Shown: positions 10,205 to 64,000, counted from the stretch's first letter. The stretch: DNA of 64,000 nt from Saccostrea cucullata (GCF_032062105.1 NW_026929671.1:310001-374000); one strand, 5' to 3'. The notes: generated by a model not told the origin, from the letters alone. Translations and numbers: made by a program.

Positions 10205-10496
10205 TGTTTGTAAGTTTGTTTGTTTGTTTGGATATTGTTTCATGTCCCTCTCGATAATTTTTCATTAATTTAGAGACGCCACTACTTGCCGGTGAAGAGC
10301 TGCGTTTTTCCCCTGTATTCGATACTCATGGCCATGAACAGGGAGGGATATTTTTCATGCCAGCCCCTAGTGCGACAGCGGATGTTAGTTTATACGGTCT
10401 CTACATCCCACATTGGGATTCGAACCCGCTACTTAGAGATTGACGCAATATTCTGCGACTCTAGAGCAGACGGTATAACCACTGCGCCACATAGGT
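10205..10496 (-). mobile_element. tRNA-derived SINE, degenerate, same family as 23704-23998
   Basis: Minus strand has an A box (TGTGGCGCAGTGG), a B box (GGGTTCGAATCCC), a GAGACCGTATAAAC core and a (CAAA)n tail. Confidence 0.7.
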
Positions 10497-28553: not shown

Positions 28554-29853
28554 TGTCACACTTAGATTTTGACTGTTTTTACACTTTTGTATAAATTCAT
28601 TCAGTCGCATATAAAGCCTCTATCAACGCGTTAATATTATTATTTAATAATTATATTTTACATTTTAAGATATGTGTCACGTATTTTCCTTAATTCAATA
28701 GTTTCTGATTGTTGTATAAATATTTAATATTTTGTTTACTTCATGGTTCAAACTTATTTTTTTAAATTGTGACATCTGAGTCTAATTGTATTTGATTATT
28801 TTTTAATCTTTGATGTACATGTAATTATTTTTTCTCACTGTCAGACAGATGTAATCCAATTAATTAATCAGTTCCAAGATGTCATAAGCGAGTACCTTGT
28901 TTTCTCATGTTGAGTTGTTTTCGCTTCAAATTGTTTATAACTGTCATTTAATTATCATTACTCGTTAATTGCCTTTTCACTAATTGTTATCTTAAAATCC
29001 TGAGTTTAATTTTTGATTGGTCCTTTTTCAAAACCTATTTCTTTAAATTGGGCAAGAGTTCGGAAATGCGCATCCATTCTATGATTGCGCTAATAAAGAC
29101 ATAACATTTATAATTCCCACTCTTCGCCTCTATTTCTAGGTATGTACTTGTATTTAAATTATTTACTTTTATCTTTCTTTTATATAAATTTAATGTATTT
29201 TGGAATTAATTAAGATTTGAATTAGTACACTGAAAAAAATAATTATGGTTTTTGTAAATACGCTTATTGCATTTATATCTTGTTTAATTATTTTGACAAT
29301 ATCAAATATAACTTAGCTAAAGTGAAATAAGACATATCAACAAGTACAACTCTTCTATGTAGGGAGAAAGAATTTTTGTAATTCTTAAATATGTAAATCG
29401 TTTTGAGAAGTGCATAATGACGAGCAAAAATTCTATTCTTAAAACTTTGTAAGAGCTGAAAATTTGTTAGCGATATGTAAATAATTATCTCTCTATTCCT
29501 AGCTGAATTAATTAATACTTGATTTTTTTTTATATATGTCTACTATGTCAAATAATTTGTACTTTGTTTTATTGTGAAAGTTGCTATGTTCTTTTGTCAC
29601 ATCCAGTCATCATCAATGTTTTTATGTATATATTCTGAACATTGATTTCAACTTGACTGTGTTACTTTAAGTTAAAGATCCATTCTATGATTGCGCTAAT
29701 AAAGACATAACATTTATAATTCCCACTCTTCGCCTCTATTTCTAGATCAAGGACAAACCTGATTGCAAGGATAGTCTAATTGACAAAAAGAATTGTCTCA
29801 ATATACGGATCGGGCTCAGTTAACAAAAAAACATACCCAAACCGTGTGAGACA
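28554..29853 (+). repeat. 5' LTR of element 1 (1300 bp)
   Basis: TGTCACAC...GTGTGAGACA. By eye it differs from the 3' LTR by 2 substitutions and 2 homopolymer indels. Confidence 0.97.
29015..29080 (+). promoter_or_regulatory. Putative LTR core promoter
   Basis: GATTGG (reverse CCAAT) at about 29015, TTTAAAT at 29042 and Inr-like CCATTC at 29074, with canonical spacing. Confidence 0.45.
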
Positions 29854-29856
29854 AAG

Positions 29857-29868
29857 TGGCGGAGATCC
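29857..29868 (+). other. Primer binding site, probably tRNA-Ala
   Basis: TGGCGGAGATCC lies 3 nt after the LTR and resembles the complement of the eukaryotic tRNA-Ala 3' end (TGGTGGAGATGC) with mismatches. Confidence 0.55.
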
Positions 29869-30018
29869 ATTCGACCCCAACCTCTCATTGCCAAGCTGAC
29901 GTGCTCTACCAGAGAAATTCCCCAAACTCAACAAATTCCCCACAGTTACTACAACTATACCATCTCTTTCAACGAAGTCAGCACCATCAAAGCATTCTTC
30001 ACGTGATTTATCTACATT

Positions 30019-31443
30019 ATGCCTGGACCTACAACTAGACTCCAATCGTCCAGTAGTTCTCTTTTCCGCCGCTTAGGATACAAACCAAATGTCCCACTAA
30101 ATTATCAAAAACAAGCGACTTCTACGAACAATCCCGAGATGGAAGCAACAGTCGCAATTGCAGCTGACAACTATCCCTATTCAGGGACAACATCTGCATC
30201 TTCATTGGCACCACCAAAAGATCCTCCCCCACCTCCACCTCAACTTCACCAAGAGACAGATACTTCCCAATGTGTTGAGAACAACTTGCCACCAACACCA
30301 ACTAGAAATGCCCTGTACCATTCTCAGAACGATCAACTTACTACAGACATAACGCACAACACAGCGATACCCGCAACACCAGCTGTCTATGCACCACCTC
30401 CACCTACACAGAGTAGTACGGCTGTTCCGCACACAGTACCAACATCAACATTTGTGCCTTACCCGCGCGCAAATATTAGCCTTGAACATTATGATGGAAA
30501 GACCTCCGCGACCCAATTCTGGACACAGTTTATGACCTACATAACACTAATGAACATACCGATCGAAGTTGCTCACGATTTCTTCTCTTTCTATTTAAAA
30601 GACGCAGCAAGAGACTGGTTCTTTCAACTTGCTCCAGAAATTCGGACATCTCTGGACCATCTGAAAGCTGCTTTCCTGACCCGTTTTAAACCACAAGTTC
30701 CTTTCAGTCTTGGATTATTCGATATAAAACAACAGAGTTCAGATTCAGTCGACCAGTATATTTTAAGAATTCAAAAGTTAGCCACTGACTCCACCATGCC
30801 GGAAGACTGTCTTACTACGATGATCATGAAAGGATTGCATGCCCCAATTCGAAAAATAGTGATGCCACAATTCCCACAAACTATAGAAAACTTGCGGAAT
30901 TCAGCTTCTATTGCAGAAATGACAATCAAAATGGATTCTCAAACACTTACAAACAATGATGAAAATAGTGTTATCAACGCCATGTCTGCAGTGTGTAATG
31001 TCACTAACCAGCTTCAACAAACAATTGCAGCTATGCATTCTAACGTACCAAACAACAACAGCTGGGATACTACTGCTCGATCGACTAACAGCAATTCACA
31101 GGATCATCCAACCCAATACAGTGTTCCTCCACCAAATCATTACCCCTCTGGACCTCGACCTAAATACAACCATAAGCCACCTCAATACCAACGTACACAG
31201 CAACAACACTACATGCAAGGTCCACGACAATTTTATCATCAAAGACCACGAGATAACTTCCCCGCTTCAACCAATTCCAATCCAGTTCCAGAACATTACT
31301 GTCATGGATGTGCAAGTGCTACATGTTTTTCTAAACTACATTGTCCAGCCAGAGGTCATTACTGTACTGAATGTGGCAGATACAATCATTTTGAAAAATT
31401 TTGTGTAACGAAATATCTTCGCAATTTCAACGGTTCACGCTAG
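30019..31443 (+). CDS. gag: Gag (474 aa) of element 1
   Basis: Retrotrans_gag-like core (YLKDAARDWF...LKAAFLTRF), Pro-rich N-terminus, C-terminal CTECGRYNHFEKFC zinc knuckle. Confidence 0.9.
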   Translation: MPGPTTRLQSSSSSLFRRLGYKPNVPLNYQKQATSTNNPEMEATVAIAADNYPYSGTTSASSLAPPKDPPPPPPQLHQETDTSQCVENNLPPTPTRNALYHSQNDQLTTDITHNTAIPATPAVYAPPPPTQSSTAVPHTVPTSTFVPYPRANISLEHYDGKTSATQFWTQFMTYITLMNIPIEVAHDFFSFYLKDAARDWFFQLAPEIRTSLDHLKAAFLTRFKPQVPFSLGLFDIKQQSSDSVDQYILRIQKLATDSTMPEDCLTTMIMKGLHAPIRKIVMPQFPQTIENLRNSASIAEMTIKMDSQTLTNNDENSVINAMSAVCNVTNQLQQTIAAMHSNVPNNNSWDTTARSTNSNSQDHPTQYSVPPPNHYPSGPRPKYNHKPPQYQRTQQQHYMQGPRQFYHQRPRDNFPASTNSNPVPEHYCHGCASATCFSKLHCPARGHYCTECGRYNHFEKFCVTKYLRNFNGSR

Positions 31444-34400
31444 GGACTCGCGCCTGTTCTTGGAGTAAAATCTAAGGATAGGCACCAGAGAAAGACTTCA
31501 TCACAACATGATCGGGAATCTGCTTCCATAAATTTGGCTACAACCTTAAAACAAAACAAAGTTGAAATTTCCGTCAAGACAAATCGTACTAATGCATTAT
31601 TGGATACCGGTGCAAGTATCACAGTAGCTAGTGCTTCTTTCATTAACAAAACAAGCCTCGCCGGTGCTTCATTTGAACCTGCTACACATCCAATCATCAA
31701 AGGTGTTACAGGTGCTAGACTCAACGTTCTTGGTGTGTTAACAATTCCTATATCTATTAGTGGTGTCAAATTTTCACATCCCGTCCATATCATACAAGAT
31801 CTTCATTATCCTTTCATTCTTGGAGTGGATTTCTTAAATCAACACAAGGCAAAGATTGATTTCGACTCCCAGTTATTGCTGCTTCCTGATGAAAACAATG
31901 ATATTCACAGCATTCGACTTTTATCTGCAGCCGAAGGACAAGCCCGAGCTTCTAAAACAGTGCTTATCCCGAAACAAAGTGAAACAAATGTACCTGTTAA
32001 CATTTCTCATTTAAAGAGCTGTGATAACGTTCTGTTGGATCCACACCCTTCTCTTTCCCATAAGAAGCAGCTTATTGCAGCAAGATGTTTAGTTCAAGTT
32101 GACAAAGGCAAGGCATACCTTCGCGTTATGAACCCGACACATTCAGATGTCGAAATTCAGGCTCGAACAATTCTTGCTTCTGTCATTCAAATAGATCAAC
32201 AAAATGTATTTTCTTTCGATTCACCTCCGAGTTCTACTACCTCTGATCAAAACGTGCAAGACAACAACCTAAACTTTGACCTCTCAACTTCTGATCTTAC
32301 CACTGAACAGAAGACAGTGCTACTGGACTTCCTGCGTGAGCACAGAGACTCTTTTGCATCTGATCTAAATGAACTAGGACGTACTGACTGCTACAAACAT
32401 AGGATAGATACTTTGCCGGGAACTCGACCTGTTCGACTGCCCCATTACAGAACAACTCCTCAAAATCTGACCGAAATTGACCGTCAAGTTAAAGAACTGT
32501 TAGAGAATGACATCATAGAACCTTCCAATTCCGAATGGCACTCCCCTGTCCTTCTTGTGAAGAAACCAACAGGTGAATTTCGTTTTGTTGTGGATTACCG
32601 CAAACTTAACAAATCAACCATACCAATGTCTTTCCCACTTCCTCAACTTGAAGATGTATTTGATTCTCTTGGAGCTTCTTCACCAAAATATTTCTCCTCA
32701 CTCGATCTTAAGAGTGGATTCTGGCAACTCGAAATGGACCCATCTACAAAACACAAAGCTGCCTTTATCACCCAAAGTGGCGTTTATGAATGGAAGAGGA
32801 TGCCGTTTGGACTCATGAATGCCCCAATTTCATTTCAAACTTTAATGACTAGTGTTCTTCGAAGCATTCATTGGAAATTTGTACTTTGTTACATTGACGA
32901 CATTCTTATCTTTTCGCCAACATTTGAAGATCACTTAAGACACCTGCACGAAGTTTTCGCTCGACTTAAACAGGCAAACCTTAAACTACAGCCATCGAAA
33001 TGCCATTTTGCTCTGAAAGAATTGAAATTCCTGGGCCACATCATAACACGTGAAGGAGTTGAAGTCGACCCTACAAAGACTGACACAATACGTCACTACC
33101 CAACTCCTACAACCCAAAAACAGGTTAGAAGCTTTTTGGGTATGGCGAATTATTACCGGAAATTCATCGAAGGTTTTTCCAAGATAGCTGCTCCGCTTAA
33201 CCCGCTTCTTGTAAAAAACACGAAGTTTTCTTGGACTCAAGAGTGTCAGACATCGTTCGAAACATTAAAACAAGCATTAATAACCGCTCCAGTTCTCTCT
33301 TATCCCGACCCATCCAAGACATTCATCCTGTCTTGTGACGCCTCTGATGCAGCAGTTGGATATACTTTAGGACAGAAGACCCTAGACAATAAAGAAGTTG
33401 TCATCGCCTATGGTGGAAAGTCGCTCACAAAAGAAGAAAAGAAATACACAACTTCAGAAAAAGAATTACTTGCTGTTGTTCGTGGTGTACAAGCTTATCG
33501 CCCATATCTTGCTGGGAAGAAATTCACCATCTACACAGATCATAAAGCCCTAATTTGGTTGAAAACAGCAAAACATACCGGAAGACTCGAACGTTGGGCG
33601 TTAAAACTCCAAGAATACAACTTCGATATTATCCACAAACCTGGAAAAAAAGAATTGCGTTGCCGATGCTATAAGCCGCATTCCTCATGAAACCTCTGAA
33701 ACAGCTGCCCCAATCTCTGTTATGTCGACTACGTTTCCACCAGCCTCTTCCTCTCAACAACCATCTGCGGACCAGCTCATCAACGAAAATGACATACAAG
33801 AAGGTATTCAAATCAAGTTCACTTATGATGAACCAGAGACTCTTATCATGGCTCTAGAAGACGATGAAATACACCAAATTCTCCAAGACAAAGACACTTT
33901 ATTTCAACTTCAAACAGCATGTCCTGATTACGTCGATATCGTCAAATACTTAACTGATGGTTCCCTACCAGAAGAACGCAAAGTCCGTGACAAAGTACTT
34001 TCAGAATCACAACATTATTGCATCATGGACGGCCTCTTATTTCACCTTTTTCAACGACGTTGCAAACGCCAACCGGAAGAAATGAAATTCATCTACCAAG
34101 TAGCTCTTCCTAGAGAACTTCGTAAAAATGCTTTGTTTGCCTACCATGACAGCCTTGCTGGCGGTGGACATCTTGGTATCGATAAAGTGCGCTTCTCTAT
34201 AATGCAGAAGTATTACTGGCCCAGGATGAATCAAGACATCATTGATTATGTGCGTTCATGTGATAGATGCCAGCGTGCCAAAAGGGACTTCCACCCTTCC
34301 AAACCTCCTATGACATCAATGCCACGCCGTGAAAAGTTTGAATCTTGGCAGATAGACATCCTAGGTCCACTCAAGAAATCATCTGAAGGATATGAATATA

Positions 34401-35652
34401 TTCTTCTCTGTATCGACTCCTTCACTCGTTGGCCTGAAGCATTTCCCCTGAAATCTCAGGATGCACAGGAGGTGGCTGAAGTATTGTTCCGGGACATATT
34501 TGCCAGATATGGTTCTCCATTGATTTTGATGTCGGATCGTGGTAGGAATTTCATGTCCAAACTTATCAACGCCTTGTGTGAAATATTCGAGATAACACAA
34601 TATCACACCTCTTCCTATCATCCGAACACTAATGGCCTTGTGGAGAGACAAAACAGTACCATAGCCCAATCTCTACGTGCATACTGTGCCAATGACCAAG
34701 ATAAGTGGCCAAAACTTCTCCCCGGCATAATGATGTCCTTTCGAAAATCTCCCCATCTTGGTTCGACAGAATTTGCGCCATTTGAGTTGATGTTTGGACA
34801 AGAAATGCGGTTACCTTTTGATGCATCCCTCCAACCAAAGGACAATTTACAACGCGATGCCAAGCAATACATGAAAGATCTCCTAGACCGGCTCAAAGTT
34901 TCAACTGATATCGCCAAAGCCAACGATCTCCACAATCAATCTAAAAACAAAGAATACCATGACAAAAATGCCAAGCCACCTGACTTTTCCATTGGAGATC
35001 TTGTCCTTATGAAGAATCACAAAGTCCCCACTGGTTTATCGCATAAGCTCTATGACAAGTCTGATGGACCGTACCGGATTGTTGGTAGAGGACAAAATTT
35101 CACCTACAAGCTGCGGCGCCTCTCAGACAACAAACTGCATGTTTCCATGATTAACGCAACGAACCTCAAGCATTACTATCCCCCCGAAGACTCGCGATCC
35201 CAGATGCCATCGTTCCACCAACTGATAATGATGATGCCCCGACAGTACCCCCTAATGATGGACCTTCTCAAGACAATCAACACCGACCCGATAATGACCA
35301 GGCCATCAACAATCCTCAAAATCAACTCCCTGATGCACGAGAACAACAAACTCCATCCCAACATGATCAGCAATTACCTGACAATTCTGTTTTGTTACAG
35401 GACAATCCCGCTGAGTCACGGCCACAACCCCCGCTTCCCGGAAACACGCAAAACACAAAGAAATGGAATTTCGAGAAAATCCTACGTGGTAAAATGAAAA
35501 ACGGTGTGCGCCATTTTCGCATCAAGTGGTTAGACGGAACAACCACTTGGGAGCCAGATACATGTTTTGATGCTGACGTTCTCCGTGATATCAATCGTAG
35601 ATTCACCATGACTGGAAAATTTCGCAAATCAAATTTCAAACGCACTGCATGA
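31444..35652 (+). CDS. pol: Pol of element 1: protease, RT, RNase H, integrase, chromodomain-like tail; two 1-nt frameshifts
   Basis: LLDTGA, YIDD, CDASD, HHCC and DDE integrase motifs, GPY motif. Frameshifts at the A7 run (33645-51; restores KPGKKNCVADAISR) and at about 35200, which joins the integrase to ORF 35392-35652. Confidence 0.92.
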
Positions 35653-36534
35653 GTCAATTTTATTTTCACCTTTTTTTTATATTGCTTCAATTATTACCAC
35701 AATCATGTCTATTTTTAAGCAATCTTAGACTTATACTTAACGTTTCTGTCTGTGACTTTTCAAGCCAATTATGATTTACACAAGAGGTACTCCACACTTT
35801 GAGTTTATGTATTGTAGGTAGTTAAGAATATGGTCACTTTTTGTGTAAGGTTTTATGTTGCATGCAACACATTACTTTTACTTTTATGTACAAAAAATTA
35901 TTATTTTAAATCAACTAAAAGAAATATTTTATGAGTTATAGTCGGTCACCCTTTAAGTAGGTTTCCTGCTGATAGTTAGTGCTGGATTGTTTAGCTGATC
36001 ACTAAACTTTCATCGATTGTGCTATATCTCATAACTCCATTTAGGTTTATTTCGGATCTGTAGGAAAACCTTCACATAATGTTTTGATCATGACTTTTTA
36101 CTTACGACTTGCATATTTTATTTTCATTGTGTTCACCTTAGAATCCTTAAGAGGAATGCTTTTCAGAGAATTTGATCTTCCTAATGCTTATCAGCAATTG
36201 TCGACCAGTTCTTTCATGCATACCTTGTGTTCTTCTGATGTGCTACTGTGTTACCAGATGCATCTATATGTAATTGGTTTGAATGGTTAAACAAATGAAA
36301 CTATTGTCGTGGTCAATATTGCGTTACCCAATCTGGATACTCCTATACATATAGAATCCATAATGCTTATAACAGAGTACAGTATCTAAAATGTTCTAGA
36401 TCCACATTTACATGATGTTACATAGCGAGATATATTGTATGCTTGCCCTATATGACAACGTTCAAGTCCAGATTTTCATCATTCAGTCTCATACAAAGCT
36501 TTGAGGGCCCAAAGCTATTGGGGCCATGGGGGTA

Positions 36535-37832
36535 TGTCACACTTAGATTTTGACTGTTTTTACACTTTTGTATAAATTCATTCAGTCGCATATAAAGCCT
36601 CTATCAACGCGTTAATATTATTATTTAATAATTATATTTTACATTTTAAGATATGTGTCACGTATTTTCCTTAATTCAATAGTTTCTGATTGTTGTATAA
36701 ATATTTAATATTTTGTTTACTTCATGGTTCAAACTTATTTTTTTAAATTGTGACATCTGAGTCTAATTGTATTTGATTATTTTTTAATCTTTGATGTACA
36801 TGTAATTATTTTTTCTCACTGTCAGACAGATGTAATCCAATTAATTAATCAGTTCCAAGATGTCATAAGCGAGTACCTTGTTTTCTCATGTTGAGTTGTT
36901 TTCGCTTCAAATTGTTTATAACTGTCATTTAATTATCATTACTCGTTAATTGCCTTTTCACTAATTGTTATCTTAAAATCCTGAGTTTAATTTTTGATTG
37001 GTCCTTTTTCAAAACCTATTTCTTTAAATTGGGCAAGAGTTCGGAAATGCGCATCCATTCTATAATTGCGCTAATAAAGACATAACATTTATAATTCCCA
37101 CTCTTCGCCTCTATTTCTAGGTATGTACTTGTATTTAAATTATTTACTTTTATCTTTCTTTTATATAAATTTAATGTATTTTGGAATTAATTAAGATTTG
37201 AATTAGTACACTGAAAAAAATAATTATGGTTTTTGTAAATACGCTTATTGCATTTATATCTTGTTTAATTATTTTGACAATATCAAATATAACTTAGCTA
37301 AAGGGAAATAAGACATATCAACAAGTACAACTCTTCTATGTAGGGAGAAAGAATTTTTGTAATTCTTAAATATGTAAATCGTTTTGAGAAGTGCATAATG
37401 ACGAGCAAAAATTCTATTCTTAAAACTTTGTAAGAGCTGAAAATTTGTTAGCGATATGTAAATAATTATCTCTCTATTCCTAGCTGAATTAATTAATACT
37501 TGATTTTTTTTATATATGTCTACTATGTCAAATAATTTGTACTTTGTTTTATTGTGAAAGTTGCTATGTTCTTTTGTCACATCCAGTCATCATCAATGTT
37601 TTTATGTATATATTCTGAACATTGATTTCAACTTGACTGTGTTACTTTAAGTTAAAGATCCATTCTATGATTGCGCTAATAAAGACATAACATTTATAAT
37701 TCCCACTCTTCGCCTCTATTTCTAGATCAAGGACAAACCTGATTGCAAGGATAGTCTAATTGACAAAAAGAATTGTCTCAATATACGGATCGGGCTCAGT
37801 TAACAAAAAACATACCCAAACCGTGTGAGACA
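36535..37832 (+). repeat. 3' LTR of element 1 (1298 bp)
   Basis: Near-identical to the 5' LTR; preceded by the G-rich tract GGGGCCATGGGGGTA. Confidence 0.97.
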
Positions 37833-40880: not shown

Positions 40881-41866
40881 AAAAAAAGATTTTGACTTAA
40901 GCTAAAGATGTTTCATGATCCCGGGGCCAGGTCTTCCAAAAATCTATTGGAATTCCCATAGGTACCAATATGTTATATTTTTGTATTGATATCTAGCATT
41001 TTTTATACTTTATTAAAAATCTTTTAAATGAAAAGAAGAAAAACACTTGCTTTGGCCTCAACTCTACCTTTAGATATATTGCAACACATGTGTGCACACT
41101 CACCGAATGGTTGTAGTACATGTACGTTAAAATATACTGAAAGGAAAAAGACACTTAGAGTAACATAATATGCAAATGTTTTTGACCGCATGACCGAAAG
41201 TTGCGAAATCTGGTCAGATGAGTATCTTGGTAACTATGAATATAAATCAGTGTTCAGAATTACTCAACCGTAAACATTGGAAAGTGCTAAAAAGCCACAA
41301 ATACCGCAACTTGATACTGTTTATATTGATGATCCTCTAACTGGCACATGCCCGTGATGTTTGTGTTTTTCGGCGTATTAACCCAAGGCCCACTGTAGCA
41401 TGGATTTATCAAGAACATCTCGAAATCAATCACATTCACCCTTTCGAAAGGTCTCCGTAAAGTCCATGTTTTTCTCATTTAAAATCTGTGGGACTAAGTT
41501 GAAGATAGGATTGAAATTGCCCAAACTGGTCTCTTTCAAAAAAGGTGTGCCTTGTTGAAAGGATTGAATAATATCTCTATTTGAAGGATAAACACATTAA
41601 TAAATTCAATGCAAAGGAGAGTCAAGGCTATGACAGATACGCGAAGGTGATTTTGAGTTAATGAGAAATTTCAATTTTCAATTTTGGGAGGTTTCGTCAT
41701 ATGAGTTTCAGTGATTCATGTGTAATGTGTATGTGTAATTATTATATTATATAAAAAAACAAAATTCCAAGATTTTTACCATGATCAAGGTGAACAGTAA
41801 TTGTTCTCATTAAACCTGGAACAAAATTCTAACTGTATAATTGGTTTATTAATTCATTTTCAGAAG

Positions 41867-43308
41867 ATGTCTTTGTCAAGCAAAGCCCAAAACAACATAG
41901 ACGTTTTGGCCTTTAGCATAAAGTGTAAAGTCCAGCAGTGTTCCGAGTGTCAAGGGGACACAGAATTCTACTGTAACACGTGTAAACATGATCTGTGCTT
42001 ACAGTGTAAAGAGAGACATGTTATTGATCTAGATACCATATACCATGATGTTGTGATTTACCGTGAGAAATATGGCTATATCCCAAAACAAGAGACTTGT
42101 GTGAGACATCCAGAGAGAGTATATTACAAGTACTGTCACTCATGTAAACTTCCTGTCTGTATCAAATGCAAAGAACACAGAGAACATAAAATCCGGGATA
42201 TAAAAAAAGTGTTTAAAACAAACCGAAAACAACATAGAGACATAGTTCACAATCTGAACAGTTGGCAAACAGACCAATTAAATTTCTGTTCTATCTAAAC
42301 ACCATATATGTTCCTAAAAGAAAAGACAATCCTTCTCTTGCACAACAAGCCCGGCTTTCTCTGACTGAAAAACTTAACAAGACTGATATAATTATGTTAC
42401 TGAGTGAAATCCGGGTACTAGAGACTGACAAAAGGAAAGTTAGAAACGAACATCTCTTAAGATTAATGGCTACACCGGTTTTACATAGATCTGTCACAGT
42501 TACAGATGTTCAGTGTATTGTTCATATTTCCGGTGTTACATCAGATCGGGTTTGGGTGACCGATGACGACAGTTTAATTTTGACAAATATAGCGGGTGAA
42601 ACACTTCATCATCTGACAGATAGAAGTGACTATTATGGAGGAATACACACGGTAAACAATTCCCGCGAACTTATTTACATAGACAGTGATGAGAACATAA
42701 ACAGATTAACTGAAGATAACAAAAAAATAACTACACTGATCAAGAAATCAGAACCATGGTTACCACTTTGTGTCTACTGTTCCACAGTAAATGGAGATCT
42801 ACTGGTTGGGATGAGAAATATTGATGCAGATAAAGGGAAGATAACTCGTTATAGCGACACAGGACATCACACACAGACAATATTATCACCTCAAAACACC
42901 GCTGGCAATATATATTACGAATATAGGGAACCTATATTCATCACAGAGAATCGCAATGGAGATATTATTGTGTCTGATTACACGCCTTATATGTTTGGCG
43001 CTGTAGTAGTGACAGATCGTAGAGGAAAATATCGTTTTTCCTATACAAGAACGCCATTTTCAAGAAATCAAATATGGCCACATGCAGTGTGTACAGACGC
43101 GCTACTAAATATCCTAGTGTGTGATTTAAATGATCACGTAATACATATGATTGACAAAGACGGGCATTTCTTGTCACTCCTATTGAATAAAGAACAACAT
43201 GGCAGACCAGAAGGCATGCATTACGATTACAAAACACATCTTTTATGGGTTGGAACAAGCACCAACAAAGTCCGTGTTTACAGACCCATAGAAAGGCATG
43301 GCTATTAA
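41867..43308 (+). pseudogene. B-box / NHL-repeat (TRIM-like) paralogue with a frameshifting deletion of the coiled coil
   Basis: ATG at 41867 follows a ttttcag acceptor. Two B-boxes (CSECQGDTEFYCNTC, CVRH..YCHSCKLPVC). At about 42255 the sequence jumps out of frame to SEQLANRPIKFLF, skipping about 80 aa present in the 19536 paralogue. The NHL domain is intact. Confidence 0.85.
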
Positions 43309-51375: not shown

Positions 51376-52154
51376 AGGTACTTGGACACAGATTTGAAGT
51401 TAATATTTTCTCATTTTTTCTGTATAATATCACGAATTATATATTTTAATAGCATTTCACACAAAAATTAATTAAAAATTTTATTTTATTTAAAAGTTAA
51501 TAAAACTTTAAATTTTTTGGCGGGTTTGATTGACACATCCTTGCACTTTTACAAATTTCAACTTTATTCTTAATCCTTAGGAAAAGTGGCAATTTTGATG
51601 TGTTTTGATGAGAAATATTAAAACTTTTATCAAGAAAAATAATTTTATTCAGAGTAGAAATGTTAGAGAGCAAAACACTTTCACAAGTATCGTCATTCCG
51701 AACTAAGAGATGCGTACAGAGTTTAGCAAATCGAGCACACTCGTGTTATGTACACAGTTTTTGTAAACAGGGCTTGAGTTCTGTTATTGTTTATATTTAG
51801 AATTCACCGGGTGCGTTCAATCGTCACAGTCTGCTTACCACAACTGCACGGACTGACAATATATTGTGTGTTTGTTTTGCTTTCGAACGTGTCTACTCTG
51901 AATTTTCTGGATTATAGTATTAATATTTTTAATTTATACAAAACGAGATTGCCACTTTTCCTAAGGATTAAGAATAAAATTAAATTTGTGAGTGTGCAAG
52001 GATATGTCAATCAAACCCGCCGAAAAATTTGAAATTTCAATATCTTTTAAACGAAATAAGATTTTTGATTAATTTTTGTGTGAAATGCTATTAAAATATA
52101 TAAGTCGAAATATTATAGAGAAAATAATAACTTCAAATCTGTGTCCAAGTACCT
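51376..52154. mobile_element. Kolobok-type MITE with long TIRs
   Basis: AGGTACTTGGACACAGATTTGAAGTT and AACTTCAAATCTGTGTCCAAGTACCT; TTAA TSD; inverted similarity extends about 230 bp. Confidence 0.85.
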
Positions 52155-52158
52155 TTAA

Positions 52159-52540
52159 GAAATACAATAAACTCTGATTAGTCACACTCTCATTTAAAAG
52201 TCTACATTTCATTTTATATTTATATATTTTGTAGGCTATGAAGGACAATGTATTGTTTAAAATGAAAGTTTTTTTATTACAATATGTTGGAAAACCAATG
52301 ACAATAACTTTCCATGACACATCTATGTTTAAAAGCAATGTTATTTTACTCCAAATTGGTTTTACTGCACAACAATCAAAAACAAGGTGCTTAATGTCCT
52401 CCTCTACATTACAAATCGAACAGTTTACACTTAAGTCTTTTTTCCATTTACTAACATACTTATTACAGGCCAGTAAGTTATGCATTAATTTAAAATTAAA
52501 CTCAGACACATTCTTATCAAATATTTTTTTGACTTTTTGA
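52159..52540 (-). mobile_element. L1/Tx1-like ORF2 C-terminal zinc-binding fragment
   Basis: EFNFKLMHNLLACN...CSICNVEEDIKHLVFDC; cut by the Kolobok MITE. Confidence 0.7.
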
Positions 52541-52639
52541 CTATCTGAACCATAATTGAAAAGAGACTAAATTCCAAATAAACAAAACATTTATTAGTTA
52601 TGAGTTATAAACTCAGCTCGAAACACAAAGCGTTTAATA

Positions 52640-54049
52640 TTAGATTCCTAAATTGAGAGAAACACACAACCTGGACTTAACATCATCTTGTACATAACCG
52701 TCTTTTGCATTTTCAGATTTCCACCTTCCATAAAGTTTAAATAATCTATCTGACACCGAGTTATTAGCTGCAGAAGTTGCTCCTTCACTTCTCAAGGGAT
52801 GCAGCCAAACTTCTTTTTCTAAACCATTTGTATCTAAAACAGACCTAAACAGTTTTCTTACTCTGGAATAAGAAATTGCTTGTCCTCAGCGAAACTTCAT
52901 TAACCTTTACAACAATGCCCTTGTTCAATAATTCATCAATGCCGTTACTTACAAAACCAGAATGCTGCTTTGCTGAGTTGTTGTTGCTGCAAAATTTAGC
53001 TTCAGGATAGTGATAAACAGGTACAATGTATCCAGAAGAAACAATATTACACACTGTATCGCTAGCTCTAAGAACGTTTTTCAAAAAATATACATGTTCT
53101 CTTAATCTACCTTTGACATTTTGAACATTGCACTTAACTTTAGCTTCACATTTACATATGTCAGAAAAAATGCTCACTATTTCATTCATTTCATTACTTT
53201 GATTTCTTATCAGCGTTGTCACTGGTAATGGTGGCTGTTGGGACTGACACTCTTCCCGGCATCTTGAGCGGGCACTGGGTTGACACATGTCCCTCCTCGA
53301 AGCAATAGAAACAGACTGTAGGTTTAGCGAAGGGGAATCTAAATATGGTAGCTTGTGTCGGTGCTGACCAAGGGCGGATGGAGTTTCTGGATATGTTGAA
53401 ACGAAAAAGGTCGTTCCGCATAACTGGGCCGCCGTTTCTATCGTATGGCTTTTTGTCAGCTTTCTCCTTTCTACGCTTGACTGCCCTGGACACTGCTTTC
53501 CTAAGTTTATTTGCCTTGTCAGGACCTTCCACCAAATTATCCCCCAAATGCTCCTCCAGTGTATCCCAACCATACTTGTCGGCAATGCGCACGCGCGTAT
53601 TCCTCTCTGTCAATTTGTCTCCGGTCGAGTTGATAACTTCTTTTGCGTCTTCAATTCTCCCAAACTTCAAGTATTCGTCTACCAAATCCAGTTCAGCGAT
53701 TCTGTTCTAATTAAATTCAAATGGAGTCTTACAACCAGTATACTTACAAGTATTTTGTCCAATGTCCTGTTCAGAATAAAGCTCCTGCAAATTTCTGATA
53801 CTCTGTCCTCCAGTTCTTGTCTCATGTGAGCCCTCTTAATGCACTTTTAAGCCTGCCTGTGAACAAGGATAAGGCCTCTTCTATAGAAATAGCGCTGTCA
53901 TTTTCTTTATCCGTTTTACCGTCGTTATTCCTCTCTATTCTAATTTGTTTGTGCAGATTCTCTTCGAACATTGTACTTTTAGCTGAGTATGAACTCGAAT
54001 GAATAGAATACACAGACAGCTGTTTAAATACCCAAGATATTTTACTCAC
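52640..54049 (-). mobile_element. Internally deleted DIRS-superfamily (tyrosine recombinase) retrotransposon
   Basis: Gag-like ORF (RVRIADKYGWDTLEE...CFYCFEEGHVSTQC) overlaps an RT N-terminus (VKGRLREH...GYIVP...NNNSA...ELLNKG). This is fused at about 52890 to a YR C-terminus, HPLRSEGATSAANNSVSDRLFKLYGRWKSENAKDGYVQDD...LGI*. Confidence 0.85.
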
Positions 54050-55820: not shown

Positions 55821-56133
55821 CAACATGGGTCATACAGGTAATAGCTTTCATGATCAATTGCGTTACGAAAAACATTTTTATACATTATTTTTTAAATATT
55901 GTAAGTACCAGCCTAATCGTGTACAAATTTCCTGATTTCACACAAGTTTTATAAACGTACTATACGTCTTTTGCTGTTCGCTCAAATTTTTAAAAAGTTA
56001 GGCTCATAGTAAACAAAAGCTTTGAAATGAATGACCGTTCTCGATTTACTGTGGAAAAAGATTTACTGTAGAAAATCACAAATGTCGGCTGACCCCTACC
56101 ACATTGTATGTTTTTTTTTTCTTTTAATTATAT

Positions 56134-56286
56134 TGTTGTGGAACCGAATAGTTCGAGGTACGAGCTATCTAAAACCTGAATGAATTGGCAGTGTTGATGT
56201 CCCCTTACTTCAGTGAGCCTCGTGTCCGCGTGTGTCCCGACCACCGACCGTCTCCTGCAGTCCAGGACAGAAGCATCAGAACAACA
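56134..56286 (+). repeat. 5' LTR of element 2
   Basis: TGTTGTGG...ACAACA, a direct repeat of 63175-63327. Confidence 0.95.
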
Positions 56287-56287
56287 T

Positions 56288-56301
56288 TGGTGTCAGAAGT
56301 G
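56288..56301 (+). other. Primer binding site, tRNA-Leu
   Basis: TGGTGTCAGAAGTG is complementary to the 3' end of eukaryotic tRNA-Leu(CAG/CAA). Confidence 0.9.
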
Positions 56302-56711
56302 AAAACGTTTGACCCCGCTTACTTCCCGTTTTTCTTTCCTGCTAAATTTGCAAGTTTTGCGGATTTACTCCCCAGTAGGTATAGTGGAGGAAATTCGCTT
56401 TAATTTTTCATTCGTCTTTTTCATAAATTTTTTACTGATAAAACTAGAAGAAACAATAGAAATTTGTTGTTAAGTGTTTAATATAAGTGCTTTTTCTATC
56501 GAACTGTATAAAATCTAAATATCTTTTGGTTTTTGGTAAACTGTCATTTTGGCGCGTATCTAGGCTAGGTACGGAACGCAGTTATCATCATAATTATTAT
56601 TCACTGAGTCACATTTTTCTTGTGTGGATATTTTCAGTTTTAAATTGAGTTAGATTCACCTTATCTGATTTTTCTTTCCTATTACAAGAAATACAAAAGT
56701 ATATTCATTTT

Positions 56712-57482
56712 ATGTCACTGTCAAAACCCAAACTAGATAATTTTTTAAAGAGAAAAGCATCTCATAGACAAGGCAGTCTTTATTACACGCCCGTCCTTTT
56801 GTCAGATAGCAAGGGATTTGCAATCAAAAGAAAGATAGAACTAAATTTTGTTGAACCGGGCTGGCGTTCAGCCCCTGCTGTAGATTTGCTAGAAAATCAC
56901 TTGAAGAGAAATAGCGATAAAAAGTATTTAATCTATATTTGGTTAGGTACTTGCGACATATCGGTTAAAGAGGGAAAATTCACAAGAGTTAGGTCTTGGG
57001 ATAATACTGTAGTTGAACATATATTGTCTCAATATCATAGAGTTGTTGCAATAAGTAAACAGTATCCAAACATAAAAGTCAAATTTATTGAGGTGCCCTG
57101 CTTTTCTATTTTTGCTTTCAAGTTCAAAGGTCATACTGACCAAGATTCATTTAAGGTGCATGATATAGAAATTTGTAGGCAGGTGGAACAGCTAAATTGT
57201 GCACTCAGAGAAATTAATTCCAGCATCAATGAAAGAACTCTACCTTTTAACTGTGATCTAAAGAGACGTCGAAAGGATACAAATAAAAAGAAAGGCGGTT
57301 CCCCTAGAGTACGAGTGTCCTATAAATTTGCGGCATACTACGACGGCATTCATGCAGACACAGACTTAGCCCTTATCTGGACAAAACGTTTAACAGATGA
57401 CATTAATTTGAACTGTTTTAAGACTCTAGATGAAGATGTTTTAGACATTCTTGTACCAGAAGAAGAGTTGAGCTCTCTGTGA
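56712..57482 (+). CDS. SGNH/GDSL hydrolase-like protein (256 aa), accessory ORF of element 2
   Basis: Uninterrupted ORF with blocks in order: I VLLSDSKG, II PG, III IYIWLGTCD (GTND-like), V YDGIH. Confidence 0.75.
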   Translation: MSLSKPKLDNFLKRKASHRQGSLYYTPVLLSDSKGFAIKRKIELNFVEPGWRSAPAVDLLENHLKRNSDKKYLIYIWLGTCDISVKEGKFTRVRSWDNTVVEHILSQYHRVVAISKQYPNIKVKFIEVPCFSIFAFKFKGHTDQDSFKVHDIEICRQVEQLNCALREINSSINERTLPFNCDLKRRRKDTNKKKGGSPRVRVSYKFAAYYDGIHADTDLALIWTKRLTDDINLNCFKTLDEDVLDILVPEEELSSL

Positions 57483-57507
57483 AACTTTGTGGAACCAAAT
57501 TACAAAT

Positions 57508-59075
57508 ATGATAAACATAAATACCGCCTCTATAGATGAGCTCATTACCCTGGAAAGCATTGGTGCCCAACGAGCAGCAGCCATCATTAAACTAAGAGAT
57601 GAAAAAGGTTATATTACCATGAATGATATCGAAGAAAACCTGCGTAACACAGCATCCACGATACAGAAGTTACTGTATGCAGAACTAATTTCTTTTGAAA
57701 TATCACCTACACTTGTGGACTCTATCAAGGAGAGACAAGATGGAGAACATAAAAAGGCATTGGACAATGTGTCAAAGGAGTTTGGCGTGAAACTCGACCA
57801 AGTTCATGAGCACTATAGAGCTATGCAGAGAACTTATGAAGAAGAAATGAACAAAATGACAAAAATGATGGGAGAACTGGAAACAAAAAACTTTCAGAGA
57901 AAAAGTCAGAATCATTAGTCACTGGAAATATTGTTGACCACCTAGCACCACATGGTATCTATGGAATCAAAGATGATGGTCAAAAAAGCCTAAAGCTGGA
58001 GAAAAATACTCTAGGAGCAGAAGCCAGTGGAGGAGTAGCAAGTTGTGTTTCTGCTGACAGTGGCTTGGTTAATCCTGGCCCAACTAGCAGTGTATCACAA
58101 ACTAAATCTGGGAAAATAACTTTTACGAGTGGTGCTAATAGTGGCTTGAAACAATCTGGCCCATTTAAGACACACATCAGTTGACCCCCTCCTCCTAAGA
58201 TGGCTACATTTGACGGACGCAGTGAATGGTGCCCATTAAAAACCCAGTTCGATAGGATTGCAGAAAGATATAAATGGTCTGAGGATCAACGCTTGGAGAG
58301 ACTAATTGAGTCCCTAAGAGACAAAGCACTTAAATTCTATTGCACCTGTGCCAAACCAGTTCAAAATAACTACAAGGACCTATGCAAGATATTCAAGTCT
58401 AGATTTGGTCAAAAAGAATTACCCTTGACTGTAAGGCGAAAACTCCAAGACATAAAACAGGAAAATAAAACAGTTGAGGAATTCGCAGAAATAGTCCAGG
58501 AAATGGTTGCCGAGGGATATCCAGATGCTCCAGAAAGTGTTATAGATACTATTGCCACTGACACTTTTTTGAAAGGCATCGAAAACAAGCGTGCGGCACT
58601 AACAGCTATGGATAAAGACCCAACAACTTTAGAAAGTGCACTACAACAGGTCAAAGCAGCAATAAATAACCAAAGGCTAATTCTGGGAGTCCGTAAACCT
58701 GAAGTCAGGAAGGTTCGATTCAGCGATGCATACAGTGACAGTGACGAGGAGCCTGAATTTAGCTCACGTACAGTTCGTCCCCAGAGTCGTGTTGACAAGC
58801 TTGCTGCAGATGTTGACTCATTGAAACTAGGTCTGGAAGCAACCAATACCAAGATTGACAAACTTATTGGGCTCATTTCAAACCGTTCAAGATCCCCCCA
58901 GAGGACAACAACCCAATCCAGATTATCCTCTCCAGTGAAAGAAGGTGCCTGTTATAATTGTGGGGAAAAAGGCTACTTTGCAAAGGACTGCAAACAACAG
59001 CGTAAATCAAGATCACCATCCCCGCAAGCTAAAATAAGCCCTACATTTGATATGAGACTCTATCAATGCAAATAA
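57508..59075 (+). pseudogene. gag: Gag of element 2 with an N-terminal ComEA-like HhH domain, disrupted
   Basis: MININTASIDELITLESIGAQRAAAIIKLR, then a coiled coil. Frameshift at the A-run near 57888 and TGA near 58182. Capsid-like ATFDGRSEW and the knuckle CYNCGEKGYFAKDC follow. Confidence 0.85.
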
Positions 59076-62000
59076 GAACCACAAAATCTGATGATCAATG
59101 TGAAAGTTAACGGAAAACCAGAAAAGGCCATTGTAGATACAGCAGCACAAATATCGGTCATAAATAGAGAGTTTGCAAACTCGTTGACGCCACCTTTAAA
59201 TATTGGTAAGGAGGTGACTCTTAAGGCTGTAGGAGAGAACAGTTGGTTAAAAGCTAACTACTCAAACGATGCCAACATTGAAATTGAAGGGATTCAATTT
59301 AAATGGCCCGTTATAGTTGCAGACATAACTGATCAAGTGATTATTGGTCTTGACTTCCTTAGTGCCAACAATGCTCTGATTGACCTCAATGACCAAAGTA
59401 TAAGCATTCAAGGAATGAAACTTAAAGCCGAGGTGCTGAAAGCTGAGAAGAAACCAGTCAGTGTGGCCAGAGTGTTACTTAAAACCAAGCTTCGGATTCC
59501 GCCTCATACTTCCGTACACATAGTGGGCAAATTAGATAACATCCTTGAGGAGGAAGTCCTAATACAACCATCTAGAAGCATGAAAGGGTTACTCTCTCCC
59601 TATGCTATAACACAACAAGAATCTGCTGATGTACCTATCTTGCTCAAAAATGTGTCGGCTCATAGAGTAATCTTGCCAAAAAATCATGTTCTTGGAACAG
59701 CAACACCATTCGATGGAGTGATTGAGGACCCTGGGCAAATTCAGGATGAGGGATAAAGTTGTAAGACCTTCAAACACCTACCTAACTATCTGTTAGACTT
59801 GGAAAAGAGATCAATTGAGAATCTTTCCCAGAACGAGGCCAACAAGGTACATGATCTACTCATTGAATCTCAGGATGTTTTTTCAGCAGATGACATGGAC
59901 ATAGGCCTTTTCAAAGGAATCACACATAAAGTAAACACCAGGGGATTCGCAACCAGTCCGTGCCAAACTTAGACGTACACCACTAGGCTTTGAAAAGGAG
60001 GAAGAAGTCCACCTGAAGAATTTATTAGATAATGGAGTCATAGTTCCATCAAAGTCAGAATGGGCGTCTGCACCAGTACTGGTGCGCAAAAAAGATGGCA
60101 CTGTGCGGTACTGTGTTGACTTCCGGAAAGTAAATAGCCTTACCAAGAAAGATGCATTTCCCCTCCCAAATATTGAGGAATGCATGGATACCTTAAGTGG
60201 AAATGTCTTCTTAAGCACACTGGATATGGCCCAAGGCTATTACCAAATAGAAGTGGACCCAAATGACCGTCATAAACTGGCCTTCATAACAAAATATGGA
60301 TTGTATGAGTTTGTTAGAATGCCACTTGGCATGCAACAGTCCAGCCACATTTCAACGAATGATCCAGCTTGTTTTGCATGGACTAAATTGGAGGGAAAGC
60401 TTAGCCTATCTGGATGATGTTATTGTGCTGGGGACTTCATTCGACAACCACCTTCTCAACCTCAGAGCTATCCTTACCAGGTTTAGACAACATAATCTGA
60501 AATTAAAACCTAGGAAATGCTGTATGTTTCGAAAAGAAATACAGTTTTTGGGTAGAATTGTTAGCGAGAAAGGTGTATCTGTAACTCCGGATAGTATACA
60601 GTGTGTAGCCCAGTGGCCTGTACCAAGAAACCGAAAAGATGTGGAGACTTTCTTGGGATACATGAATTATCACAGAGAACACATCAAGAATTATGCTGCC
60701 CTGGCCTCCCCATTGTATGACCTTACCAAATCCAAAAGCACATTTGTTTGGGGTGAAGCACAAGACCATAGTTTTCATTCTCTAAGAAAGGCAATGTCAG
60801 AGCCAGCTATCTTAGCATTCCCTAAGCCTGATGGTTTATTCATACTTGACACGGATGCCTCGGATCATTCATTAGGTGCAGAATTATCACAAGTACAGAA
60901 TGGAAAAGAGGTACTCATAAGCTATGCAAGTAAAATCTTATCAGCTACCCAAAGACGTTACTGTGTAACAAGAAAGGAACTACTTGCCATTGTCGTCTTC
61001 ACACGACAATTCAGATTCTACCTCCTCGGACGCCCCTTCATTGTTCGCACAGACCACCACAGCTTAGCATGGCTTCTGGGTTTTAAAAATATAGAAGGAC
61101 AACTTGCGAGATGGTTGGAAGAACTCTCGCAGTACAATATGACTATTCAGCACCGCAGTGGGAAAGCACACAGCAATGCAGATGGACTCTCAAGGATACC
61201 TACGACAGATCCTCCATGTGACTGCTACGATGCTGGAAAGGGCATCAGTGAGTTGCCTTGTGGTGGATGTAAGTACTGTCAGAGAGTCCATGAACAATGG
61301 AGTAGATTTGCTGAGGATATCGATGATGTTGTTCCACTAGCTGTCCGTACGGCACAAACAGATTGGTGCTCAGAGGATTCTGAATCAGATAAGATCACTG
61401 ATGGATGTAACTGGTCTATACGTTTAGTCACAAGGAGCTGAGGGAAGCGCAAGAAAATGATCAGGATCTAAAATATCTTCTCCGTCGGAAAACAGAATGT
61501 GGTAGAGCTTTCTCTTGCTAGTCCAGCTGTAAAACACTGGTGGAACTCAAAAGAGCAACTTGCAACTGTTGATGGAGTGCTTTACTACATATGGTTTGAT
61601 GAGGATACAACATCTAAGACACCACTACTTCTTGTTCCAAAAGAACTAAGAGAAACAGTGCTGGCAGGCTGCCATGACTCCAAATTTGCAAGTCACCATG
61701 GACAGCAGAAGACCTTGCAGAGACTGCGCTCAAAATACATTTGGTATGGTGTAACCCAGGACTGCAAAAATTATGTTCAGTCTTGCAGAGAGTGCAGTGC
61801 AAGTAAAAAAAACCACATTCAACCAAAAGCTCCACTGGGCCAATTCCATGCAGGGATCCCTATGGAAAGAATACATATAGATATTCTAGGACCATTCATA
61901 GAATCAGCTAGAGGGAATCGCTACATTGTAATGATGATTGACCAGTTTACGAAGTGGCTAGAATGCAATGCCATTCCTAACCAAGGAGCAGAACAAGTGG

Positions 62001-62977
62001 CCTTGTCATTGGTTGAAAGATTCATTGCAAGAATGGGGTGTCCTCTTCAGATCCACTCGGATCAAGGTAGGAACTTCATGAGTGACTTATTTCAAAGATT
62101 ATGTAAAATGCTAGAGATCACAAAAACGCGCACAACTCCATACTGACCATGTGCAAATGGTCAAATAGAGCGGTACAATAGAACTATCCTACAGTCGATC
62201 CGTTGCTATTTAAAGAATGTGCGTTTCCAGCGACATCGGGATCGGCATTTGCAACTCATTGTCGGTGCTATAAGGGCCACTGTAAACAGACAAACCGGAT
62301 TCACCGCCAACAAAATGATGCTAGGACGAGAGATTTTACAACCTGTAGACATCATGACGGGTATGGGTGAAAATCAACAGCCTCGAGAACCATCTGACTA
62401 TGTGGAGGAGCTAGAAGAAGTAATGTCTCAGGTCCACGCTATTGCCAGAGAAAATCTACATACTGCACAAATGCGTCAAAAACGAACCTATGATTTGAAG
62501 CTTCACAACCACACATATGATGTTGGAGATGTAGTCTACATGATAAATTCATCAACAAAGATAGGACAATCTAAAAAGCTACAAAAACCTTGGATTGGTC
62601 CATTTGTTGTGACTCAGAAGTTGTCACCAGTTCTTTATCGCATAAAGAATCGGCGAAAGGAGAAAGTGGTCCATCATGATAGATTGAAGAAATGTTCTGA
62701 CCGTGACATCCCAGTGTGGCTGACCAGACTGAGACACACAGTGACAACAGCTGTACCGCCACAAGAACAAGAAGAAGAGGAGGAAGATGAATGCTACCTA
62801 GGAAACCTATATGGCGACCAGAGCGGAAACATTCCAAATCAAGATTCAAGAGCCCCCAACGATTCAGGTGAAAATCCTACAACCGCTTGTGATCCAAGCC
62901 CTACTTCAAGAGCTAACTCAAGGGAGCGTCGCCGTGTTAGGCTGCCAAAGGCCTTGGCAGATTATGATTTGTCCTGA
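59076..62977 (+). pseudogene. pol: Pol of element 2 (PR, RT, RNase H, IN) with several stops and frameshifts
   Basis: IVDTAA, YLDD, DTDAS, HHCC, DDE and WIGPF motifs. Lesions at about 59754, 59940, 60325, 61420-61500 and 62144. Confidence 0.92.
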
Positions 62978-63174
62978 GCAAGTACATCATTATTCTAAGG
63001 TCAGAATGTTTATATCTGTAAATACGTTATTATTTACTTTTCAGGCATTCAGTTAAAATTGATATTTTCAGTTAATTTGTATTAATTAATACTTGTATTT
63101 TGTGGCTTGCTAATGCTGGCCCAGACTATCAACTTTAAGCTTTATACAAGGGATTTAAATAAAACGGGGAGGAG

Positions 63175-63327
63175 TGTTGTGGAACCGAATAGTTCGAGAT
63201 ACGAGCTATCTAAAACCTGAATGAATTGGCAGTGTTCATGTCCCCTTACTTCAGTGAGCCTCGTGTCCGCGTGTGTCCCGACCACCGACCGTCTCCTACA
63301 GTCCAGGACAGAAGCATCAGCACAACA
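63175..63327 (+). repeat. 3' LTR of element 2
   Basis: Follows the PPT and is followed by the ATAT TSD. Confidence 0.95.
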
Positions 63328-64000
63328 ATATATTCGTAAATTTCAGCGGAGAAAAATGTTGAATGCTATGGTTTAGTATGGAAAGCCGTAGGGTACCCCC
63401 ACATTATTATTATTTTTTCCTATATAATTATACCAAAAATAATTATCTCATCCAAAACTGAAAATCTTGCTTTTTACAACATTATTATTATTTTCCTGCA
63501 ATAATTATAATGTTGTCTGTTAAAATGTACACATTATTTTATTTTCTCCTCCAATTATAATTATTTACACTTTACAATAATAATCTTGCCAGTCAATGTG
63601 GACACGATATAATTGTAAAAAAAAAAAAAAAGAAGAAAGAAAAAATGAAAAAAAAATAAATTTAAAAAAAAATTTAAAAAAAATAATAATTTTTTATTAT
63701 TATTATTATTTTGTACACATTTATTTTTTTTTATTTTACTTCAACATCATAGACATTCTTATTTCATCATTTTATAACAATGCATCCCTGTAATAATAAT
63801 GTAGTGATTGGAAAAAAAAGTTATTTCCGAAATCTTCGTTATATAATCTTTGCAACAATAATAATGATGTAAACGTCGGAAACTTTGTTTTTATTTTCAA
63901 CAGGAAAGATAACTTCTTTTTTAGTGACAGTAACGAAAACTCTGTCCCCTTCACAATAATTATAAGATTGTGACTGTCTACATTATTTGAAGCGTGAAGA

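Follow-up and report, generated by a model that had tools for sequence, protein, structure and literature searches.

A predicted SGNH-fold esterase-like gene upstream of gag in Ty3/Gypsy retrotransposons of bivalves

The title of a paper by Kapitonov and Jurka (2003) reportedly pairs esterase and PHD domains, in non-LTR retrotransposons (LTR, long terminal repeat) of the CR1-like, L2 and RTE-X types. The esterase in ORF1p of the element ZfL2-1 (PDB 4c1b) is weakly active and binds acidic phospholipids and liposomes, not oligo(A) RNA; in the same 2013 paper a transposon-specific His, located four residues before the oxyanion Asn, was described as part of a His/Ser pair, and Oskar was aligned as a non-catalytic SGNH protein (PMC3905857). 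Among LTR elements, the Vesta elements of bdelloid rotifers carry a GDSL esterase/lipase as their open reading frame (ORF) 3, and such genes are also present in the Athena/Terminon Penelope-like elements (PMC5408684). Vesta ORF3 is located 3' of pol, where env would be, has kept the S-G-N-H residues and does not cluster with the esterases of long interspersed nuclear elements (LINEs) (PMC5408684; also PMC6431247). Here we describe an esterase-like ORF in a Ty3/Gypsy element of the oyster Saccostrea cucullata. The element spans positions 56134–63327 on the + strand of a 64,000-nt stretch of DNA, which is called the window in the following. In at least three Ty3/Gypsy clades the esterase is the 5'-most gene, located between the primer-binding site (PBS) or leader and gag, and the same family constitutes the first ORF of bivalve LINEs, ahead of a PHD-finger ORF1 and an ORF2 for endonuclease and reverse transcriptase (RT).

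The encoded protein and its family

The ORF (56712–57482, + strand) runs from ATG to stop over 256 codons, which is very unlikely to occur by chance because stops would account for approximately 7% of codons in DNA of 36% GC. An AlphaFold2 model of the protein, derived from an alignment of 106 sequences, reached a pLDDT (predicted local distance difference test) of 93.5 and a pTM (predicted template modelling score) of 0.89. Comparison of this model with the PDB by Foldseek yielded 81 matches at an expectation value (E) of 1e-3 or lower, with CJ0610C as the best one (E 1.2e-7) and template modelling scores up to 0.66. The 50 matches listed are without exception SGNH/GDSL hydrolases or designed scaffolds and include, besides CJ0610C, PatB, sialate O-acetylesterases, platelet-activating factor (PAF) acetylhydrolase and Iah1. 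In a library of viral structures, almost all matches listed are phage esterases and tail proteins. The SGNH fold had been set beforehand as a test of a preliminary description of this locus; judged by the structural model, the ORF is shown to encode a stand-alone protein with a predicted SGNH/GDSL fold.

The preliminary description had recognised SDS, G, GTCD and DGIH blocks and a basic KRRRK..KKK loop, with the Ser and the Asp-x-x-His retained and the Asn of block III replaced by Cys, and all of these features were found again. The four motifs (SDS at residues 31–33, Gly50, GTCD at 79–82, DGIH at 211–214) coincide with SGNH blocks I, II, III and V in the predicted secondary structure. Conservation was counted in the alignment of 106 diverse family members, most of which are only 25–30% identical to the window protein. 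Ser33, part of an SDSKG sequence right after a strand at 26–31, is found in 105 of the 106 members and Gly50 in 100, whereas Asn162 is invariant (106/106). In block V, which precedes a helix at 217–235, Asp211 is present in 104 members and His214 in 106. The canonical Asn of the GxND motif in block III is missing: 103 members have Cys81 and the other three Asn, and it is unusual for a Cys to be conserved where the oxyanion Asn is expected. Four residues before Cys81, Trp is found in 96/106 members. The acidic C-terminal tail of about 20 residues (window 57417–57482) is a feature of the closer relatives, including P0015, and not of the other aligned members.

A direct search of protein databases returned 24 homologues, the best of them 90% identical. 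The profile search against 1.84 billion cluster representatives gave 1748 matches at E 1e-3 or lower, 265 of them at 1e-30 or lower, and those listed are nearly all stand-alone proteins of about 240 aa. When the 106 members were compared with Pfam, Lipase_GDSL was found weakly in 16 and Lipase_GDSL_2 in five; every other listed family was found in one member. The named members all come from Mytilus or from metagenome-assembled genomes (MAGs) of clam symbionts, which probably contain host DNA. No relative was found among the IMG/VR viral contigs and a single one, L028, in a collection of bacterial and archaeal genomes, where it resides within a complete Gypsy element, at 41.7% GC, on a contig from a 'Sedimenticola sp.' MAG. 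The members of the P0033 cluster have been deposited as proteins of 'Candidatus Thiodiazotropha' MAGs. Both the L028 contig and those of the P0033 cluster are probably host (clam) DNA that was binned with the symbionts. The family is large, contains many bivalve sequences and resides on retrotransposons. Current annotation lists its ORFs as hypothetical host proteins, both in the genomes of Mytilus and even inside symbiont MAGs; recognising them would correct these annotations.

Since Ser, Asp and His are near-invariant, a catalytic function can be argued for. A less likely explanation, but the most serious of the alternatives, is that the SGNH fold has been kept as a non-catalytic module which binds lipid, membrane or RNA. 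The OSK domain of Oskar is an inactive, RNA-binding SGNH fold of this kind, devoid of the catalytic residues. The replacement of the oxyanion Asn in 103 of 106 members would fit such a module, as would the basic loop at about residues 184–194 and the overall charge of the window protein (43 Lys+Arg versus 33 Asp+Glu). The binding of ZfL2-1 to liposomes, which is driven by charge and independent of the active site, together with the low turnover of that enzyme, points in the same direction (PMC3905857). However, a conservation of 99–100% for Ser33, Asp211 and His214 among proteins of about 25–30% identity is hard to explain without catalysis, and no Oskar structure is among the 50 Foldseek matches listed. 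An inactive, OSK-like protein, also considered in the preliminary description, is therefore disfavoured by the conserved triad residues.

Position of the gene in Ty3/Gypsy elements and in LINEs

The esterase gene was found at the same position and on the same strand in approximately 15 loci, which belong to three RT clades and show 27–92% identity. L001, L002, L003, L006, L007, L009, L016, L017, L023, L024, L027 and L028 have esterase, gag and pol in this order on a single strand. Close relatives with the esterase 5' of gag are L003, L005, L006, L007/L008, L009, L023, L025/L026 and L027; the distant ones, at 27–34% identity, are L001 (from Mytilus galloprovincialis), L002, L016, L017, L024 (on a 441-kb contig) and L028. 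Within the window clade, the distance from the esterase stop to the gag ATG varies between -1 (an overlap of 1 nt) and 40 nt. In L016 and L025, pol is followed by an esterase gene, as expected for a junction across an LTR; in L025 the order is integrase, esterase and then the next ORF.

Bootstrapped neighbour-joining trees of a few sequences each were calculated for the esterase and for RT/RNase H. Three Gypsy clades, identical in their internal branching as well, emerge from both trees, namely the window group with L016 (86% support in the esterase tree, 100% in the RT tree), L002 with L024 and L028 (96% and 100%) and L001 with L017 (80% and 100%). Because the two trees agree, the esterase has travelled with RT for a long time. 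The pairwise ratio of nonsynonymous to synonymous substitution rates (dN/dS) of the esterase gene is 0.18–0.19 for unsaturated pairs; for the same lineages, gag gives 0.07–0.20 and the protease 0.05–0.15. Hence, the esterase gene is under purifying selection as strong as that on gag and protease.

The features of the window element are as follows.

56130..56133, putative target-site duplication, left copy, ATAT; the same four bases follow the 3' LTR
56134..56286, + strand, 5' LTR, 153 nt, TG..CA; 97.4% identical to 63175–63327
56287..56711, + strand, leader of 425 nt with a PBS-like site (TGG from 56288), ATG-free
56712..57482, + strand, predicted SGNH-fold esterase-like ORF, 256 aa, putative first cistron; open frame with two short in-frame deletions
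57508..59075, + strand, gag, broken; N-terminal helix-hairpin-helix, capsid-like Retrotrans_gag domain and CCHC knuckle
59076..62977, + strand, pol, broken; protease, RT, RNase H and integrase (Pfam domains in Ty3/Gypsy order)
63166..63174, + strand, polypurine tract, adjoining the 3' LTR
63175..63327, + strand, 3' LTR, 153 nt
63328..63331, putative target-site duplication, right copy, ATAT

The two LTRs differ at 4 of their 153 positions and the PBS-like site starts one base past the 5' LTR. Paired LTRs, PBS-like site, polypurine tract and short duplication are the structural features of a Ty3/Gypsy element, and the capsid-like domain and CCHC knuckle of gag together with the domain order of pol are those of its genes. 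The ORF thus lies inside an LTR-bounded element, as had been proposed; for the target-site duplication the evidence is weak, as ATAT is only 4 bp in AT-rich DNA. The sole tRNA gene in the window, a tRNA-Ser, does not match the PBS of the element.

Also the proposed distance of 25 nt between the esterase stop and the gag ATG was substantiated: position 57508 is supported as the Gag start by relatives with an uninterrupted Gag of 448 aa, which has the same helix-hairpin-helix start and begins 19 nt past their esterase stop. This N-terminal domain of the window-clade Gag is ComEA-like (Pfam HHH_3, E 1.8e-8 in the window, 57508–57640) and precedes a coiled-coil-like stretch and then the capsid domain. 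It is also present at L023:917–1050, L027:1191–1310, L006:1096–1419 and L007:1087–1293. For the Gag of a Gypsy element, it is unusual to start with a module of the DNA-binding type.

Compared with uninterrupted relatives, gag of the window copy is disrupted by one frameshift and, according to which relative is used, by one or two stops; pol contains about three frameshifts and about eight stops. The esterase ORF had been called intact. Its frame is indeed open, but comparison with the nearest relatives shows that two short stretches have been deleted in frame, and with one of them a residue was lost which nearly all family members have. With gag and pol broken and the esterase lacking this residue, the window copy is a dead relic.

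In bivalve LINEs, the family was found in several arrangements. L029 from Mytilus coruscus has the esterase ORF, then a 720-aa PHD-finger ORF and then a gene for endonuclease and RT. In L013 and L015 the esterase is followed by a zinc-finger ORF with an endonuclease downstream, and in L004 and L011 by a PHD ORF. P0128 is a single protein in which an esterase domain of this family is fused to a PHD finger. The preliminary description had listed SGNH domains of LINEs merely as a parallel; the family in fact shows direct homology to a first ORF carried by LINEs. Members from LINEs are placed between the Gypsy clades in the esterase tree, and a clean split into Gypsy and LINE members was obtained in 0 of 200 bootstraps, with weak deep nodes. 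A deep neighbour-joining tree of 112 esterases is star-like and fits one as well as several transfers between LINEs and Gypsy elements. L029 contains a further ORF of 245 aa (8721–9458) just upstream of the ATG-free leader of its esterase; considered as a possible esterase relative, it turned out to be unrelated on comparison.

Could the ORF then be a passenger, that is a nested insertion or a captured LINE or host fragment which does not belong to the element's own gene set? Homologues do exist in LINEs, the opposite strand carries a LINE fragment at a distance of about 2.4 kb on the upstream side of the element, and LINE-borne and Gypsy-borne members are interleaved in the deep esterase tree. 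This explanation is nevertheless already contradicted, and we regard it as highly improbable: position and strand are constant in about 15 loci over the whole range of 27–92% identity, gag of the window clade starts -1 to 40 nt past the esterase stop, the esterase and RT trees are congruent and dN/dS is 0.18. Moreover, Pfam reveals no endonuclease, LINE-type RT or PHD ORF between the LTRs of the window element. As initially suggested, these findings support the ORF as a dedicated accessory gene of an LTR lineage.

The window contains some further features. A second, young Gypsy element at 28554–37832 has LTRs of 1300 nt which are 99.7% identical, a gag ORF of 474 aa (30019–31443) and a pol in two long ORFs (31534–35497); it explains the GC-rich stretch of negative GC skew at 30–36 kb. 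Only 165 nt separate its LTR from gag, and its RT groups weakly with the window clade. ORFs with zf-RVT on the minus strand (52069–53685) are probably a fragment of a non-LTR retrotransposon and unrelated to the esterase ORF, which is located on the other strand and enclosed by the LTRs. B-box zinc-finger ORFs on the + strand at 19536–21747 and 41801–43308 are probably TRIM-like host genes or paralogues. The tRNA-Ser (AGA) gene, 90 nt long, is located at 10406–10495 on the minus strand and its 3' end is unlike the PBS.

Translation and possible function

The 425-nt leader of the window element is free of ATG. Including part of the 5' LTR, the ATG-free stretch before the esterase start extends over 514 nt (56198–56711), in which 8.9 ATGs would be expected (P = 0.0005, from shuffled sequences). 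ATG-free leaders were also found in L027 (at least 402 nt) and in the LINE L029 (528 nt). With such a leader, the esterase would be the cistron that is translated first from the full-length RNA of the element. Gag, whose start is so close to the esterase stop in the window clade, is then probably made via reinitiation or another route of downstream initiation. The protein is probably a working serine hydrolase with Ser33, Asp211 and His214 as catalytic residues, in which oxyanion contacts may come from the backbone and Gly50, next to the unusual conserved Cys. By analogy with the ZfL2-1 ORF1p esterase (PMC3905857), its most likely role would be to deacylate lipids or membranes, or to bind them, while the ribonucleoprotein or virus-like particle of the element is being assembled or trafficked. 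The basic surface loop may aid the contact with membranes or nucleic acid.

Taken as a whole, an element-borne SGNH first cistron, probably coding for a serine hydrolase with a lipid- or membrane-related role and preserved here in a dead copy, appears to us the probable explanation, and one in which we have good confidence.

Several observations weigh against it. Sequence-profile searches gave no significant match to any solved SGNH enzyme: with profiles of 15 or 106 sequences, the PDB returned only chance-level matches, that is ulilysin, a bacteriocin and an SGNH-scaffold design at E 0.13. The alignment to the chain of this scaffold, itself non-significant, sets Cys81 opposite the Asn of GTND. 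Pfam has no match for the window protein itself, and single-sequence searches of this protein against Pfam, NCBIfam and the PDB sequences returned nothing. With the oxyanion Asn replaced by Cys in 97% of the family, catalysis may be weak or altered, and the putative triad was placed by conservation and predicted secondary structure. All related loci were retrieved via the esterase itself, a sampling that covers only those members of the RT clades which carry it, and the second Gypsy element of the window (28554–37832) has no esterase ORF. The ATG-free leader is not universal among the relatives. Furthermore, the dead copy has about 14 disabling lesions over about 5.5 kb, and at this density a stretch of 0.77 kb would stay unbroken with a chance of about 0.14; that its esterase frame is open therefore does not count as evidence of selection there. 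Finally, substrate, translation and expression of the esterase are all inferred.

A more far-reaching possibility, which we put forward only tentatively and consider rather doubtful, is that the Cys-marked SGNH family represents an exchangeable 'ORF0', which, in bivalves, was repeatedly transferred between LINEs and Ty3/Gypsy elements and serves as a first cistron essential for propagation in both. If this were true, a lipid- or acyl-dependent step would be common to two mechanistically different kinds of retrotransposition.

That the protein substitutes for env, as a surface, receptor-destroying or fusion-helping esterase for spread from cell to cell in the manner of the viral haemagglutinin-esterases, was another idea of the preliminary description; SGNH esterases do act as receptor-destroying enzymes in some viruses and sialate O-acetylesterases are among the best structural matches here, but a signal peptide, transmembrane segment and hydrophobic N-terminus are all missing in a hydropathy scan (maximum over 19 residues 1.01; mean of the first 25 residues -0.98), the ORF lies 5' of gag instead of where env would be, and the 50 viral-library matches listed do not include a haemagglutinin-esterase, so that there is hardly any chance for this idea to be correct.

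Comparison with known systems

With the cellular and bacterial SGNH proteins (CJ0610C, PatB, sialate O-acetylesterases, PAF acetylhydrolase Ib and yeast Iah1), the window protein has in common the fold and the succession of blocks I, II, III and V. It differs from them by a long helix and an insertion that forms a basic beta-hairpin, by Cys at the position of the block III Asn and by a gene that resides on a retroelement, and the identity is only 10–15%. The OSK domain of Oskar resembles it in SGNH fold and basic surface; the difference is that the catalytic residues are nearly invariant in the family described here.

The esterases of the CR1-like, L2 and RTE-X elements come closer. Like the present family, they are SGNH domains of retrotransposons located at the 5' end before RT, with conserved Ser, Asp and His, and both are associated with PHD fingers, although in the present family this applies to the relatives L029, L013, L015, L004, L011 and P0128 and not to the window copy. 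The ZfL2-1 esterase also has a basic surface, as the window protein does. In ZfL2-1, however, it is a domain of an ORF1p with a coiled coil, whereas here it is a separate ORF of about 240–260 aa, and in an LTR element. Furthermore, Cys replaces the oxyanion Asn here and Trp stands at the position of the transposon-specific His, a correspondence judged from the spacing only. The structure 4c1b gave no significant profile match, nor is it among the 50 Foldseek matches listed.

Vesta ORF3 is likewise a stand-alone SGNH/GDSL accessory ORF in an LTR lineage, without coiled-coil and transmembrane domains. It too is a module common to an unrelated class of retroelements, and the functions of both are putative. 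The differences are that the genes described here are 5' of gag in every locus, have Cys instead of Asn, are homologous to a LINE first ORF and come from bivalves; the two are set apart here by description, and no Vesta sequence was among the results of any homology search. The statement that SGNH domains are not part of the canonical Ty3/Gypsy layout consequently needs to be qualified: in view of Vesta ORF3 (PMC5408684) they are not unknown in LTR elements. Our survey of the full-text literature, with Repbase, GyDB and Dfam outside its scope, revealed no esterase ORF 5' of gag in Gypsy elements nor any such ORF in molluscs. What is already known are GDSL esterase ORFs of LTR elements in bdelloid rotifers, located 3' of pol. 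New in the present family are its location on the 5' side, its direct homology to a first ORF of LINEs, the Cys variant and its occurrence in three Gypsy clades of bivalves.

The replication routes of LTR and non-LTR retrotransposons differ, and Gag is not related to ORF1p. Two unrelated classes of retroelements thus have one 5' accessory module in common, and it is under purifying selection. This suggests a step at the interface with the host which is common to both classes and lies outside their canonical gene sets, with membranes, lipids or an acylated factor as possible partners. With the esterase family of bivalves, a further phylum and a further position of the gene are added to the case of the bdelloid rotifers.
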